A stretch of 64,000 nt of DNA from Oculina patagonica. Lineage: Eukaryota. The stretch covers positions 17,112,001-17,176,000 of the forward strand of contig NC_135770.1 in assembly GCF_052425735.1 (NCBI RefSeq), given 5' to 3'. Shown piece after piece: positions 48,014 to 52,885 of this stretch. Below the pieces are notes generated by a model that saw only the letters and a list, made by a program, of their open reading frames with translations, did not search any database and was not told the origin of the DNA. The first letter of the stretch is position 1. Each line of letters begins with the position of its first letter. Position numbers and translations under genes: made by a program.

Positions 48014-50334
48014 AAACTGGCGATCGAAAACTGGCACCTTTTCATGTCCGTGAAATGTGCTAACGCTCACTCTTGCCCTACTTGCTATTATGGCTATGGC
48101 TTTGTGTTTTAGGGCAACTCTGCATCGACCAAAAATGTGAAAGAGGACGCCTTTTACTTGTAAGAAAAGCATGCTATATATAATGCAAATTACCCCGAAG
48201 GCTTTAATTAAAATTTCAATTCTGTTTAATCCGTGATAATAATGGTACATGCCTAATGTACATATTCGTGTATTTATTTGACATATATATTTTAAGCATT
48301 GGGGGTTTTCCGAATTCTTGCTCTAAGTTAAACCAAAAAATCCGGAATTTTAGAATAGTTGAATCTACGATATTGCAAAAAGAATTGTAAATTAAAGATC
48401 GACTGAACAAAAATTTAAAGACGATTTAATGATGTATTTGCCTAAAATGGCTTAGTCAAAATGCTGTGTCATTGCTCCAATAATTATCGCTCGATCCATC
48501 AACTGGGAAACTCTCCAAGAAGAAATCTGCTTATGGCAGTAAAATACTGTGTTGGCCAGATTTTACATCTGTTACCGGCGCTGTTTTCTTGGCAATGTTA
48601 TCATGGATATTTACATTTCCAATCTTGGAACGTAGTTGAAAGGCGGTATTTTCAAGTTTTACTCATAATTTATTTATCCTCACTGCAAAATTACTGTTGC
48701 CAAAGTCTGATTTTATTCTGTCAAAACTGATCTTTGTAATTTTTATACTACTGTCGACAATTTATTAAGCTGCACAGGCTGGGATCAGTGGTTAAATTCG
48801 ATTCGTCAAAAAAGTGTTTCCTCTCTGATTGCTTGGTCGAAGAAAATATGCCACTTACTCAGCCGGTCTCGTGCGCAAGCTTACACTCGCTGGTTGCCGT
48901 AACTGTGCAATACCTTGCTTTAGCCTAAATTACGACTGACATAGAGGTAAGGATTTGGCTGACAGTTCCAATTATGCATTATAGGCACATCTTAACTGGC
49001 AGGTTTCATTTACAGGTCACGGGTCACAAAGATATATTTCTAATTTAAGTATAGCATTGGCACCCGGAAAATTCTCAGTCAAAGTGAATTACAGTTTGAG
49101 TACAAAAAAATGATGATATGAAAACAATCCGTCTATGAAGTCCATGCATTCAGTTTTTTGTGGAGTCTTAAAAATGTTGCCCCCTTTCAACGCTACACGT
49201 TAAAGAGATGTCCTGGCTGTGACGTTGTGTTCCATGTGTGTTCCATGTAGGTTCCATGTGGTCTTAGCTACCGCAAAAAAGTGGTCAAATCTTTCAATTA
49301 TGGCGTCCGCATAACACGGCAGATAAGTCGGAAGATTGAGGGAACATGTCCATAAAATCATTGGGAACAGGGGGGGGGGGGGGGATAAGGCTGGGAACCC
49401 AGGAACAAAAGCTGGGTTTCTGATATTTTAGGAAACGTGGATCACAAATATCGACAATTGTTTATTGCTAGACGGCAAGTTTGAGAGGTTTCTATCGGCT
49501 GAGCCCTAAACCCACTAACCCTAAGTAACCTTTTGTCATTCACAATTTTGTTCTTACCCAAATTTCAGCCTTGGGTACGTTCTTTGGATGTTTTAATTTT
49601 AAATCTTTATATTCAAATTTCTGATCGTGTGGCCGAATGCAAAGCACTTTTCAACTTTGATGCTTTTAAGTTGGCTCACAGGTATTCGGTGCATCTCCCA
49701 GCCAGTCAGGGAAGAAAACACTCACTATCACAGTGTGCTGAAGAATGAGCAACGTCCAAGAGATCTTCTGCTGTTAGTACAGGTCCTTATGCAAAAAAAA
49801 GTGATTTGTGAAGCTCCAAACTAATAGAACAAGCTGAAAACAAAAGCGGGAAACTGTCCTCGTGAATCACTAGTCCCATTACAGGCAATGGGCGAACTTC
49901 TGAAGACGAATTGGACACCTTCAGAACCAACAGAAGTGTGTTGTTCTTCACCGTAGCATGACAAAGGACCCTTGATGAGTGACACTAGTTCATACTGTTT
50001 ATTTTCCACTAAATTAACCGGATGATTAAATAACACATCAAAGCCATAATAACCACAAGTCTCATCATGTACCGAAGCGTAGGATCCTGATTGTTTCACA
50101 AGGGAAGAGCCATCTGTGGTATCTTTTACTTCAGTGGAAACCGTGTGCTTGCCACCTTTGGACCCAAAATGCTGAACTCTGTGTAACATGATAGGCTTGT
50201 TGACAGTGACAAAAATACGGTCGGCTGTAGAACTAGAATAGCCCCATGAATTACTTTCCAGAGGGAACTTTGCAAATCTGGAGCATCGGTAAACGAGTGC
50301 AGTTCTTGGGGCTTCTACAAATGGCAAAGAAGAT

Positions 50335-51001
50335 AGTGAAGAAATTATTCTACATGACACGAGCGTGGGACAAAGAAAAACAATCTGAGTCCCCGACGGG
50401 AATCGAACCCATGGCCTCCCAGATACCGGTTGGGCGCTCTAACCAACTGAGCTACGTGAGACTCGCTGTGAGCTAGGCCATTTACTTGGTTGATAAGTGG
50501 CACGCGTCCTGCATACTGCTAGGATCAGCAATGTCGAAATCATCAAATTTGTAGTAAATAATAAAGATGGTAGATTTTAAGCTCGGTGATAAATAGTGAA
50601 GAAATTATTCTACATGACACGAGCGTGGGACAAAGAAAAATCTCAGATTTTTTTTTCTTTCTTTGTCCCACGCTCGTGTCATGTAGAATAATTTCTTCAC
50701 TATTTATCACCAAGCTTAAAACCTACCATCTTTATTATTTACTACAAATTTGATGATTTCGACATTGTTGATCCTAGCAGTATGGAGGACGCGTGCCACT
50801 TATCAACCAAGTAAATGGCCTAGCTCACAGCGAGTCTCACGTAGCTCAGTTGGTTAGAGCGCCCAACCGGTATCTGGGAGGCCATGGGTTCGATTCCCGT
50901 CGGGGACTCAGATTTTTTTCTTTGTCCCACGCTCGTGTCATGTAGAATAATTTCTTCACTATTTATCACCGAGCTTAAAATCTACCATCTTTATTATTTA
51001 C
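50335..51001. mobile_element. Palindromic insertion of a 259-bp tRNA-cored monomer, 12-bp TSD
   Basis: Left arm 50335-50643 is the reverse complement of right arm 50644-50960; GGCAAAGAAGAT at 50323-50334 and 51002-51013. Confidence 0.85.
50832..50910 (+). other. tRNA-Thr(GGT)-like cloverleaf within repeat (pseudo-tRNA); mirror copy at 50386-50464 on minus
   Basis: GAGTCTCACG TA GCTCAGTTGGTTAGAGC G CCCAA CCGGTAT CTGGG AGGCC ATGGG TTCGATT CCCGT CGGGGACTCA then T7. Confidence 0.7.
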
Positions 51002-52885
51002 GGCAAAGAAGATGATAAAACATCACTATAGTATTTCATCATGTCACTAATCTCTTTGAAAGTAAGAATATAACAATCAAATACAACAGAGACAAACACC
51101 TTCTGTGACATCAATGGAAACCTAATCGCTTTTACGATCTCTTCTCCCAGGATTCGTCTCTTCGTTTTGCCACCAGGAGTTATTCCTTGCCTTTCAATTT
51201 CTTTTGTGGCCCAGCGATCAACAGCTTTAAACAGTTCCACTTCTTTCACGTTCAACCTTTCTCTCTTCACAACAGACTCGACCAGGGAACGCTCAAGTGT
51301 AACAAATTCATCTGACGTCACACCTTCTTCTGTTTGCTTGTCAATCACTTTCCAGCATCAACCTTCCAAATTTTTTTCTTCGTCAAATTTCTGAGCGTGC
51401 GGCAAAATGCAAAACACGTTTGATGCTTTTAAATTGTCTCGTAGGTATTTGGTACATTTCCCAGAGAGTGAAGGCACCCTATATTTGTTCGCTAAGTAAA
51501 ACACTTGCATCACATTACTTCCGCTTAAATTTACTTTGTCGCTGTACAAGAAACGAAACAACTCCAGCAGACTCTCATACTCACAGTCAGGCAGTTCAAT
51601 AGAGTCTGTAGTCTCCGCCATTTGACCATAGAACATGGCAAAGAACACAGGACTGCTGATCGCTAGCACAAACTGTCGCTTTCTTAAATGCAGATCCACA
51701 GTCGTTGCTAAGGGATTACTGAAGACCGCCGTGTGTTGTGGCAAGCAATTTTGGAGCGTTTCGTAACGCGGCTAAATATTGAATTTTATTAGGGGAAGCA
51801 CCTGGTATGAAAACTTTATTCATTTATATATATTCATTGTACGAGTGTAATTAGTGCCAGTCCCAAACAGTGCGTTAAAATTAAAAATCCCAACCGTCGG
51901 ACGTAAAGATTAAGAGTTCCGATCTTTTTTTTACGAAACAGAAATAACAGGGCTTCTTTATAATCTGCCTTATATAGCAATAGCTGTTTTAAACACATAA
52001 AAAAGAAACGTTACTGAAGAAACTCTGTAAATACTAGTGTTTACTACATTACAACTTTTTTTAATAATGCGAAGTGCATGACCACTATAAACAACATTTA
52101 CTATACATTTTTTATACGTCAAATTAAGCATGTGGACGTTCTTTATCTAAGGCACTGATTTTAATTTCCAAATCTACGTGCTGTTAGAGTTTTTAGCGTT
52201 TTCATTTTTCTTTCCGGTCTGATCACGTGTCTTGTCAATATGGCCGTGATTTGAAAATCTTAAAATGACTCTTTATGGAATAAACATGTGCTAAAAACTT
52301 ATCTGTGAGAGGTCTGGTTAATAACCCATCTTTGCATTGCAACAATTGACTCCACCTTAACTATTTGTTAGAAAATTTTGGCGTATTCACCGTTAGCGTT
52401 ATAACGTAAACTACTCAGTACTGTACTATTAATAGAACTCTCATAAGAAGTTCTCTATTCGGTTTCTATCATCAAACACGAACAAGTACGACAGACGGCT
52501 AGAAGAACGACTTTAAGAAGCTTAACTAAAAAACAAGAACTAAAAAATTATTCTCCTCAACAACGCTTTCGAAGCCGCTTGAAAAGTATCGAAAAGTAAA
52601 ACTCGTTGTGCTAGATATTGTATTGCGGATGTTATAACACATCCTTTATTTTATCATTTATCATTTATTTCACTGTGAACTCAAAAACGATGGCTTTTTA
52701 AACAAACAGTTTTTGTGTCGTGTTTTTGTAAGCCTTGTCCTTATCATCCAAGTGAAACTGACGAAACTAACAATTATAATCCGATGACAATTTGATTCTG
52801 TCAATTATAATCCGATGATTAATCTTTCTGAGCTTCCATGAGTTGTAGTTACTTTGTAGAGGAATACTCTACAAAAAATAACTTT

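Follow-up and report, generated by a model that had tools for sequence, protein, structure and literature searches.

A palindrome-like insertion in a coral BTB-PHR gene belongs to a young, protein-free retroelement family probably inserted by Penelope-like machinery

What is the 667-bp, palindrome-like sequence that splits a BTB-BACK-PHR gene of the coral Oculina patagonica, and which machinery put it there? The gene lies on the minus strand of the window, that is, the whole 64,000-nt stretch of DNA that was analysed and to which all positions refer. Its PHR-domain part is located downstream of the insert (49824-50321; Pfam PF08005, E 4.9e-23) and its BTB and BACK parts upstream (51014-51744; PF00651, E 8.8e-19, and PF07707, E 1.2e-7), the latter in open frames at 51361-51744 and 51001-51348. 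Read on the minus strand, the host frame runs ..DVLSSSLP up to the insert and FVEAPRTALVY beyond it. The insert spans 50335-51001 and is bordered by a directly repeated 12-bp target-site duplication, GGCAAAGAAGAT, at 50323-50334 and 51002-51013. An earlier note on this DNA had proposed the insertion, its duplication and the interruption of the BTB-PHR frame, and all three were confirmed by the mapped repeats and the Pfam domains. Contigs from two independent runs bridge an empty site that carries a single copy of the 12-mer; since the flanks are ~95% identical, this empty site could be allelic, orthologous or paralogous. None of the short-read contigs from public runs crosses the centre of the palindrome.

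The insert is made up of two arms of one repeated unit that point away from each other, as had been described, and whose lengths could be measured. The left arm (50335-50643) is antisense and comprises 309 nt or 1.19 units, and the right arm (50644-51001) is sense and comprises 358 nt or 1.38 units, with a direct period of 259-260 bp. A 25-mer marker of the unit occurs four times, versus zero occurrences expected by chance, and the inverted-repeat portions of the arms (50377-50638 and 50658-50919, 262 nt) are 98% complementary. The inversion centre maps to approximately 50642-50644. There, both arms open at the 3′ edge of a tRNA-like acceptor stem, in agreement with the placement of the arm starts at the 3′ end of a pseudo-tRNA in the earlier note. 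The arms start with AGA.. and CTCAGA.., i.e. (CTC)AGA followed by a T-run, which in the right arm is the T9 trailer of the tRNA-like module at 50648-50656 (plus strand). The outer ends differ. That is, the left arm ends at unit position q44-46 (..TTCTTCACT), the presumed first reverse-transcription start site and an end shared with dozens of other copies, and has no tail; the right arm ends at q85 (..TTATTATTTAC), the presumed second start site, and so carries a 40-nt 'tail' (q46-85; 50962-51001, plus strand) that agrees with the tail of Penelope-like elements (PLEs; PMC8557442, PMC11167929). The unit has a GC content of 44% and contains no reading frame. Rfam also returned spurious MIR matches on the palindrome.

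The same unit, hereafter F1, is found throughout the genome. A 22-mer marker gave 1273 matches at ~800 loci on all chromosomes. Copies share 95-100% identity and depart from their consensus by ~1% per site; F1 is a young, abundant family. Its arms are partial tandems of between 0.2 and more than 4 units, constant at the 3′ end and variable at the 5′ end. Outer ends are fixed at q43-46 or q84-92 while inner ends are spread over q16-q236, a pattern expected of priming on the 3′ side with 5′ truncation. The suggestion that the element is a non-autonomous retroelement is supported. Among the first 64 loci in genome order, inverted pairs were exclusively head-to-head (17 (-,+) pairs versus 0 (+,-) pairs). 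Furthermore, all 15 head-to-head copies scored (eight sequenced and seven read from coordinates) have one arm of each outer-end type, 40 nt apart (P ~3e-5), and in 8/8 head-to-head copies the target duplications are 12-14 bp. The 3′ ends read ..TTCACTA and ..TATTTAC, with no A-rich or simple-repeat tail.

These features are those of PLEs, the hallmarks of which include partial tandems, an inverted 5′-truncated copy next to them and, at just one end, a tail of 30-40 bp (Craig et al. 2021, PMC8557442). The PLE protein cuts and extends both strands, using two internal start sites whose spacing equals the tail, an arrangement that has been called unique to PLEs (Frangieh et al. 2024, PMC11167929). 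Like PLEs, F1 has 5′-truncated partial tandems with an inverted neighbour copy, a one-ended tail equal to the start-site spacing, start sites that lie within short motifs containing AC, target duplications that exceed those of LTR elements in length, and a structured RNA (the hammerhead, in PLEs) a few tens of nt upstream of the start sites. The Penelope-like geometry put forward earlier thus holds for the partial tandems, the head-to-head orientation and the one-of-each use of the 40-nt tail. Unlike PLEs, F1 has no reading frame and a unit of just 259 bp, carries a tRNA-like module and T-run in place of the hammerhead that most canonical PLEs possess (Naiad-type PLEs have none; PMC8557442), and matches no sampled PLE of the genome in sequence. 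We consider it probable, with good support, that the insert is a recent copy of a protein-free retroelement inserted by PLE machinery; its anatomy is directly observed, and the mechanism is drawn from analogy with published systems. By that analogy, the PLE protein would make a staggered double cut ~12 bp apart, as in the in-vitro PLE mechanism, and both DNA ends would prime reverse transcription on multimeric F1 RNA at q45 (..TTCAC/TA) and q85 (..TTTAC/TA). The two cDNAs would run toward one another and then be joined head-to-head; the product would resemble a palindrome, be flanked by a target duplication and have the 40-nt tail on just one of its sides. In the present copy, both cDNAs would have halted at the tRNA-like 3′ edge, the most frequent single stopping zone in F1. 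The autonomous PLE partner of F1 is one that we infer: the genome contains at least 860 GIY-YIG candidates, many of them paired head-to-head and many followed, 220-330 nt downstream of the endonuclease domain, by a hammerhead, and none of the 73 PLE 3′ regions sampled from these shared sequence with F1, nor was such an element found by pattern search.

The tRNA-like module lies at 50386-50464 in the left arm (minus strand; ARAGORN 50387-50462; Rfam tRNA 40.3 bits, versus a gathering score of 29) and at 50832-50910 in the right arm (plus strand; ARAGORN 50834-50909, Rfam and a refolded acceptor stem). The best drawing of the acceptor stem pairs 50832-50838 with 50903-50909, which places it two bases outside the ARAGORN call. 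The right-arm module has consensus A and B boxes, a GGT anticodon and a discriminator A as its last base, and the Rfam alignment covers model positions 6-65 only. Its acceptor helix is bulged and 9 bp long, position 33 is a C and positions 31:39 are mismatched; the module is tRNA-like and not a tRNA. A functional tRNA gene, which would require U33, a standard anticodon and a canonical cloverleaf whose acceptor stem has 7 bp, was considered and rejected. A T7 run of Pol III-terminator form, also present in the family consensus, is located three bases past the discriminator (50913-50919, plus strand), which argues against Pol III producing the template RNA. Within F1 the module is no better conserved than the remaining unit (1.15% divergence versus 1.0-1.4%). 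As had been reported for the monomer, no hammerhead could be found: the insert gave no Rfam ribozyme match at E<=10 and no CUGANGA core is present on either strand of F1.

A second family, F2, has the same layout with a 236-bp unit unrelated to F1 in sequence. Its tRNA-like module scores 65.9 bits (Rfam tRNA), no hammerhead was found in F2, its outer ends are 36 nt apart with one of each in 3/4 head-to-head copies, its target duplications are 11-13 bp, and its tandem arms extend to at least 12 units, versus several in F1. Importantly, the 3′ region of F2 is homologous, with a 15/15 identical block, to an autonomous PLE family, PLE-X (L076, L072, L074, L100, L101 and L105). In the alignment, the F2 module occupies the position of the minimal hammerhead of PLE-X, and the 3′ end of the F2 tRNA falls within ~6 nt of the PLE-X hammerhead cut site. 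The spacing from module to start sites is common to both families (42-48 nt and 81-85 nt after the T-run), with units that are unrelated and modules that differ; in F1, module and T-run lie ~42 nt upstream of the first start site. Given that the F2 module coincides exactly in position with the minimal hammerhead of the related autonomous PLE, the module is probably a functional stand-in for, or a template-switch replacement of, the structured RNA upstream of the start sites, a role that is putative.

Where the arms begin bears on what the module does. The 3′ edge of the tRNA is the commonest inner end of F1, with 10 of 56 arms (~18%) starting in a 15-nt window that includes the T-run, where ~3 were expected (P = 0.0013), and at least 20 other loci have a centre of the same class as the present insert, some with very short arms (q1-45 and q1-87). 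Yet in an unbiased sample both arms start at the tRNA 3′ end in just 2/17 head-to-head copies, and ~80% of F1 arms start elsewhere, the stretches q205-211 and q223-227 within the tRNA-like module being further hot spots. The earlier note had proposed a tabulation of copy boundaries as a check. Its outcome was divided: the enrichment at the tRNA 3′ edge is real, but most inner ends lie elsewhere, and inversion at the tRNA 3′ end does not hold as a rule. Moreover, the starts at this edge form a ladder over ~7 nt rather than marking one cut site (ACTCAGA, CTCAGA, TCAGA, CAGA, AGA, GA and positions within the T-run). Most retain 1-4 nt of the acceptor 3′ strand (CTCAGA in six cases, TCAGA in four, ACTCAGA in three), and a few begin precisely at GA.., which is what RNase Z canonically yields. 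The tRNA 5′ end shows no enrichment of starts (2/56 arms), and most F1 arms hold whole, uncut modules. Such a ladder is no less compatible with reverse-transcriptase arrest than with RNase Z cutting. Arrest of the reverse transcriptase by the folded tRNA-like RNA is the most likely reason for the stop at the 3′ edge, a template pre-cut there by RNase Z being less likely.

The broader proposal of the earlier note was that multimeric RNA is cut by RNase Z (tRNA 3′) and RNase P (5′) in place of a ribozyme, with a 181-nt spacer RNA or partly processed multimers serving as template. The enrichment at the 3′ edge, the exact GA.. ends and the recurrent centres with short arms, as expected of a fully processed spacer, speak for it, as do the modules themselves, whose resemblance to tRNA suffices for scores of 40 bits (F1) and 66 bits (F2), and the proximity of the F2 tRNA 3′ end to the hammerhead cut site of the related PLE. 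The ladder tells against it, since most starts keep nucleotides that a cut after the discriminator would remove, as do the majority of arms that start at the other hot spots or elsewhere, the lack of enrichment at the 5′ end and the intact modules. PLE insertion in vitro can, moreover, do without hammerhead cleavage (PMC11167929), and such processing appears doubtful overall. It is also possible, though we would not favour it, that the module is a passenger with no role in mobility and now a mere roadblock, i.e. a Pol III transcript (tRNA, trailer and oligo-U) captured once per family. Capture could have come about through a template switch by a PLE reverse transcriptase that had reached the 5′ end of a PLE-derived RNA cleaved by its hammerhead. 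The module indeed has its own trailer and T7, like a complete tRNA gene, the F2/PLE-X homology begins right at the hammerhead cut site and the tRNA 3′ end, the F1 module is not preferentially conserved, and the end ladder agrees with arrest at a folded helix. Against this, two unrelated families with different modules share the distance from module to start site, F1 and F2 belong to the repeats with the latest activity, suggestive of an advantage, and the 'trailer plus T-run' of F2 may be a homologue of PLE-X sequence (TTAAAACTTTTT) rather than a captured terminator.

Other origins can be given little weight. An ordinary tRNA-derived SINE, transcribed by Pol III, mobilised by a LINE and inverted by twin priming, would account for the consensus A and B boxes, and variable 5′ truncation with 11-14-bp target duplications would also suit LINE-type target-primed reverse transcription. 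However, the tRNA is internal and directly followed by T7-T9, so that a Pol III transcript would stop short of the start sites; an A-rich or microsatellite tail is lacking, the two fixed ends lie 40 nt apart in strict one-of-each use, arms contain several (F1) or at least 12 (F2) units in tandem, and F2 is homologous to a PLE 3′ end. A SINE is thus very unlikely, as the earlier note had already held from the internal tRNA, the T-run and the missing tail. We regard as extremely improbable a DNA-level origin, whether an assembly palindrome, a fold-back element or a MITE with long terminal inverted repeats. The 98% complementarity of the arms and a centre spanned by no short-read contig would be compatible with it, but the outer ends are not reverse complements of each other and differ by 40 nt, the inner junctions vary by copy while the outer ends are fixed, the same architecture recurs at hundreds of loci on all chromosomes, and the 12-bp duplication has its empty site.

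Among known elements, F1 also resembles the metazoan non-LTR retrozymes in its protein-free tandem units (~170-400 bp in retrozymes), low GC content, many dispersed copies and longer target duplications (PMC7229834; bioRxiv 10.64898/2026.07.22.740005). Retrozymes of this type abound in corals, and it has been proposed that they derive from PLE pseudo-LTRs as non-autonomous elements (Cervera and de la Pena 2020, PMC7229834; Li et al. 2026, bioRxiv 10.64898/2026.07.22.740005). The type I hammerhead that defines and is present in all of them is missing from F1. RNA cut by RNase P and RNase Z would have 5′-phosphate and 3′-OH ends, on which the RtcB ligase that closes retrozyme RNA into circles does not act, so that no circular RNA stage would be expected for F1. 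With tRNA-derived SINEs F1 shares a tRNA-like sequence with A and B boxes, non-autonomy and 5′ truncation, and differs from them in that its tRNA is not 5′-terminal and has its own T7 terminator, and in its lack of a LINE-like tail and its PLE-type tandem and inverted geometry. The TRIMp3 elements (Helenus, Ajax and Cassandra), in contrast, belong to the LTR elements: they have a primer-binding site and a polypurine tract, produce target duplications of 4-5 bp and contain a small-RNA part proposed to serve as a Pol III promoter (Kojima 2024, PMC10886601). Such a role is unlikely for F1, given its T-run, and the partner of F1 would be a PLE.

In PLEs and animal retrozymes the hammerhead motif is conserved, although its cleavage can be dispensed with in vitro. 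F1 and F2, both very young and highly successful, amount to a natural swap experiment, with the full PLE insertion signature and a tRNA-like module in the hammerhead's place, and for F2 a base-by-base alignment is possible with an autonomous PLE that bears a hammerhead. This makes it testable whether PLE machinery needs a cut, a fold or nothing at that position. A tentative reading, which we consider rather unlikely as it stands, is that F1 and F2 are 'ribozyme-free retrozymes', in which a host-type tRNA fold has replaced the hammerhead just upstream of the start sites and does its job in at least two independent PLE-dependent families. With the help of RNase Z and RNase P, the fold could fix the 5′ terminus of the unit RNA, or it could be a structured boundary needed by the telomerase-like reverse transcriptase. 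If true, self-cleavage and a circular RNA stage would not be required by PLE hitchhikers. The one-of-each use of start sites is a quantitative in-vivo constraint on PLE integration not seen in published in-vitro work: in vitro the sites are used alike on the two strands (PMC11167929), a result that does not account for the strict rule in F1. Finally, copies of this kind are easily mistaken for SINEs, tRNA genes or miRNA hairpins in annotation, and they disrupt genes, as at the BTB-PHR locus.

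The insert in the window occupies 50335-51001 (667 bp) and has an exact direct copy of the 12-bp sequence GGCAAAGAAGAT on each side (50323-50334 and 51002-51013). It consists of two opposed arms, an antisense left arm of 309 nt and a sense right arm of 358 nt, each a partial tandem with an internal period of 259-260 bp, and the inverted-repeat portions of these arms (50377-50638 and 50658-50919; 262 nt) are 98% complementary. The insert lies within a minus-strand BTB-BACK-PHR gene, between ..DVLSSSLP and FVEAPRTALVY.. of the encoded protein. A stop at 51348-51361 separates the BTB and BACK open frames of this gene; it may lie in a short intron or mark a gene that had already become a pseudogene when the insert arrived. 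The comparison with public data used 23 runs, all as assembled contigs. An empty site, with the 12-mer in single copy, was bridged by contigs of two public runs carrying two organism labels; the flanks of the empty-site sequence are ~95% identical, and it may represent an allele, orthologue or paralogue. Whichever of these applies, the empty site shows the 667 bp to be inserted sequence. Coordinates, arm identity and empty site thus confirm the earlier note's description of an insert with a target duplication, built of opposed arms of a 259-bp unit, that splits a BTB-PHR gene. In a poly(A) RNA run the element was present only as fragments within longer contigs.

Each arm of the window insert carries one tRNA-like module, identified as Thr-GGT by ARAGORN and scoring 40.3 bits with the Rfam tRNA model (gathering score 29). 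Its A and B boxes correspond to the consensus, and a T7 run starts three bases 3′ of the discriminator base at the end of the acceptor stem. The module folds into an irregular, cloverleaf-like shape whose acceptor helix has 9 bp and a bulge, and position 33 is C. At the centre of the insert (~50642-50644) both arms start at the 3′ edge of the module, that is, with (CTC)AGA followed by the T-run. The monomer had been described as hammerhead-free, and it proved to be so: no ribozyme was found in the window insert with Rfam at E<=10, and a regular-expression search for the hammerhead core CUGANGA was empty on both strands. Plant miRNA precursor families (MIR8562, MIR821 and similar) did match at 50521-50775 on both strands, with E-values down to 2.6e-20. 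These Rfam matches score under the gathering thresholds and are artefacts of the long palindrome, and such palindrome-driven miRNA matches are a trap in automatic annotation.

The insert is one copy of a young family, F1. In the genome of the window (529 Mb, 14 large scaffolds), a 22-mer F1 marker gave 1273 matches with at most one mismatch and, since the first 100 matches represent 64 loci, about 800 F1 loci would exist overall. Copies are 95-100% identical to the window unit, and units deviate from the consensus by ~1% per site. We numbered the unit from q1 at window position 50658, placing the tRNA-like module at q175-253 and the T-run at q256-259 plus q1-3. End positions were taken from 24 sequenced loci and ~20 more from coordinates, and arm counts from 44 loci and coordinate tables. 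The outer, flank-side end of an arm was always at q43-46 (..TTCTTCACTA) or q84-92 (..TTATTATTTAC), and the inner end varied from q16 to q236. Fixed outer and varying inner ends are the pattern left by target-primed reverse transcription from defined start sites with 5′ truncation, on a template RNA of tRNA-sense orientation. Head-to-head copies combined one q45 arm with one q85 arm in all eight sequenced cases, and in 15 of 15 when copies known from coordinates only are included (P ~3e-5 under independent ends); the window copy has its left outer end at q44-46 and its right one at q85. Target duplications were 12-14 bp long in 8/8 head-to-head copies. All pairs were head-to-head: the 64 loci that come first in genome order held 17 (-,+) pairs and no (+,-) pair. 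One F1 copy (L012:1793-2627) is interrupted at q34, where ~835 bp of unrelated DNA have inserted, after which F1 resumes and ends at q85.

Insertions of Penelope-like elements (PLEs) show 5′ truncation and partial tandems, are often directly adjoined by an inverted 5′-truncated copy, and carry a tail of 30-40 bp at one unit end only (PMC8557442). F1 matches all of these features, and its 40-nt end difference corresponds to the PLE tail. In vitro, the protein of a lizard PLE cleaved both strands of DNA and extended them, and reverse transcription began at two adjacent internal RNA sites (PMC11167929). Both F1 start sites bear one short motif (TTCAC/TA and TTTAC/TA), reminiscent of the published AC-rich PLE start site. 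The genome contains at least 860 GIY-YIG candidates, many arranged as head-to-head pairs; in many of its PLE families the endonuclease domain is followed, 220-330 nt downstream, by a hammerhead, and microsatellites often form the flanks. Many PLE copies abut (TA)n or (TATC)n microsatellites, as seen in the 3′ flanks of loci L035, L054, L067, L070, L071, L078 and L081. PLEs have a published microsatellite insertion bias, with which these copies agree. The Penelope-like geometry proposed from the window alone is therefore supported genome-wide by the fixed two-position ends, the head-to-head pairing and the 12-14-bp duplications, and F1 appears to work like a non-autonomous PLE derivative.

The earlier note had also placed the inversion at the tRNA 3′ end, which holds as a preference and not as a rule. 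In a roughly unbiased sample of 56 F1 arms, 10 begin within a 15-nt stretch that runs from the end of the acceptor stem through the T-run, where ~3 would be expected (P = 0.0013). This makes the tRNA 3′ edge the strongest inner-end hot spot, yet ~80% of the arms begin elsewhere, with lesser clusters inside the module at q205-211 and q223-227. Both arms start at the tRNA 3′ edge in 2/17 head-to-head copies of the genome-order sample, as they do in the window copy, and a query from the window centre recovered at least 20 further centres of this class. Nineteen of these were sequenced and displayed a ladder of starts: ACTCAGA three times, CTCAGA six times, TCAGA four times, also CAGA, AGA and GA, at least eight starts within the T-run, and several deeper inside the module. 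Having been chosen by similarity to the window centre, this sample gives positions and not frequencies. Such a ladder is the pattern expected if the reverse transcriptase, arriving from the 3′ side, is arrested on entering the folded acceptor/T-arm helix. RNase Z cleavage of F1 RNA past the discriminator may also set inner ends, but a single endonucleolytic cut at that point would yield GA.. only, whereas most ladder starts retain 1-4 nt of the acceptor strand. A cut that RNase Z measures ruler-fashion along the over-long F1 acceptor helix is a less likely alternative to arrest. Starts at the tRNA 5′ end, i.e. the RNase P site, were unenriched (2/56).

An autonomous partner of F1 was sought by blastn (word size 7) of the F1 unit against 73 PLE 3′ regions, out of at least 860 GIY-YIG candidates: 30 + 20 + 20 GIY-YIG loci and three further relatives of PLE-X, an autonomous PLE family. 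No match was obtained, with the sole exception of a weak, chance match of the tRNA-like part in L083, downstream of a PLE endonuclease domain, which led to a second family, F2. Pattern searches ('not-T upstream of 3′ block' or 'hammerhead core then F1 block') returned truncated F1 copies only, or none. A 1371-aa GIY-YIG family (ending ..CACATGTAGT) was rejected as evidence of a partner, having a 7-mer alone in common with F1. This element (L039-L048, e.g. G000:C3:1321794-1325015) is present in at least nine copies 100% identical over >2.6 kb, all ending exactly in ..GGGACAGCACATGTAGT with no tail variant, and looks to have been active extremely recently.

F2 has a 236-bp unit and 540 marker matches, its arrays reach at least 12 units, and many copies are 100% identical; examples are L094:753-2487 (G000:C8, about 17136534-17138268), L085, L086, L089, L091 and L083:428-640. 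Its tRNA is near-perfect (65.9 bits over the whole Rfam model; Ala-GGC by ARAGORN) and is followed by TGAAAA and T7; no ribozyme was found in F2 at Rfam E<=1. Apart from what tRNAs share in general, the F2 unit has no relation to that of F1. Its outer ends are again two alternatives separated by 36 nt, at q97-101 and q133-137 in F2 numbering, with one of each in 3/4 head-to-head copies, and its target duplications are 11-13 bp. The start sites lie 45-49 and 81-85 nt after the T-run in F2, and 42 and 82 nt after it in F1.

The 3′ region of F2 is homologous to the 3′ end of PLE-X (blastn, E 1.5e-7), represented by L076:215-420 and, on the reverse strand, L072 and L074, with relatives L100, L101 and L105. 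The block CAGTAGTGTAAGGCC is identical across all F2 and PLE-X sequences, and the tail segment GCTACTG..GGACA is conserved too. Preceding the F2-homologous region, ~240 nt downstream of the GIY-YIG domain, PLE-X carries a minimal hammerhead (CUGAUGA, a bulged U, the helix GCCG/CGGC, GAAA, a palindromic GC and UU), which went undetected by Rfam and has each of the four traits that PMC4209133 gives for the minimal hammerheads of PLEs. The F2 tRNA-like module aligns to the position of this hammerhead, with the tRNA 3′ end at most ~6 nt from the predicted cut site. Judging from this alignment, the tRNA-like module has probably replaced the hammerhead of a PLE pseudo-LTR in F2; F1 has this architecture too, but its partner was not found among the 73 sampled PLE 3′ regions. 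Spacer RNAs between tRNAs fold no more stably than shuffled sequences (z-scores 0.05 to 0.6). The only helix conserved in both F2 and PLE-X is CAGUAG/CUACUG, around start site 1, and an analogous F1 helix, AUGUAGA/UCUACCAU, was spotted by eye and was unpredicted by folding. A classical retrozyme repeat adjoins a PLE copy at L070:576-900, where canonical type I hammerheads (CUGAUGAGGCCCAGAAGGCCGAAAC) occur twice, at a spacing of 243 bp.

That two families carry different tRNA-like modules at the same position argues for a role of the module, as does the exact hammerhead substitution in F2. Against a role counts that the F1 module is conserved no better than the rest of the unit; divergence is uniform at ~1% without covariation, in a family too young to reveal selection on the module. 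A role as Pol III promoter for the whole element is unlikely, since T7-T9 follows the module ahead of both start sites, and the template must thus arise by read-through or from another promoter. Alternatively, module and trailer, which together resemble a Pol III primary transcript, could be just that, captured through a template switch at the 5′ end of hammerhead-cleaved RNA. RNase P and RNase Z products have 5′-phosphate and 3′-OH ends, which are not RtcB ligase substrates, and F1 and F2 would therefore be expected to lack a circular RNA stage. In retrozymes, the RNA is circularised by RtcB (PMC7229834). Both modules have G34 (F1 Thr-GGT, window 50869-50871; F2 Ala-GGC, L094 modules). Eukaryotes normally encode A34 in the Thr and Ala codon families, which is edited to inosine and copied as G by reverse transcriptases. 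A footprint of inosine editing before reverse transcription was considered and dropped: no A34 parent gene of the F2 module was found in the genome, and F2 possibly derives from a Cys-like tRNA.

F1 is like metazoan non-LTR retrozymes in all respects but their defining hammerhead and, lacking it, should not be classed as a retrozyme. We found no description of tRNA-bearing, hammerhead-less PLE hitchhikers in the open-access literature, Repbase reports excluded. The closest conceptual parallel is provided by TRIMp3 LTR elements (PMC10886601), in which a small-RNA gene fragment is built into a non-SINE hitchhiker. Nor is F1 a SINE in the usual sense, as had been noted from the window, the T-run after the module preceding both start sites. 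The same genome does contain an ordinary SINE family of tRNA origin (..GGTTCGAACCCCAGACCGGACCAACACTCAGGG..), with no relation to either F1 or F2, at G000:C1:6791195-6791271 and 18 similar sites.
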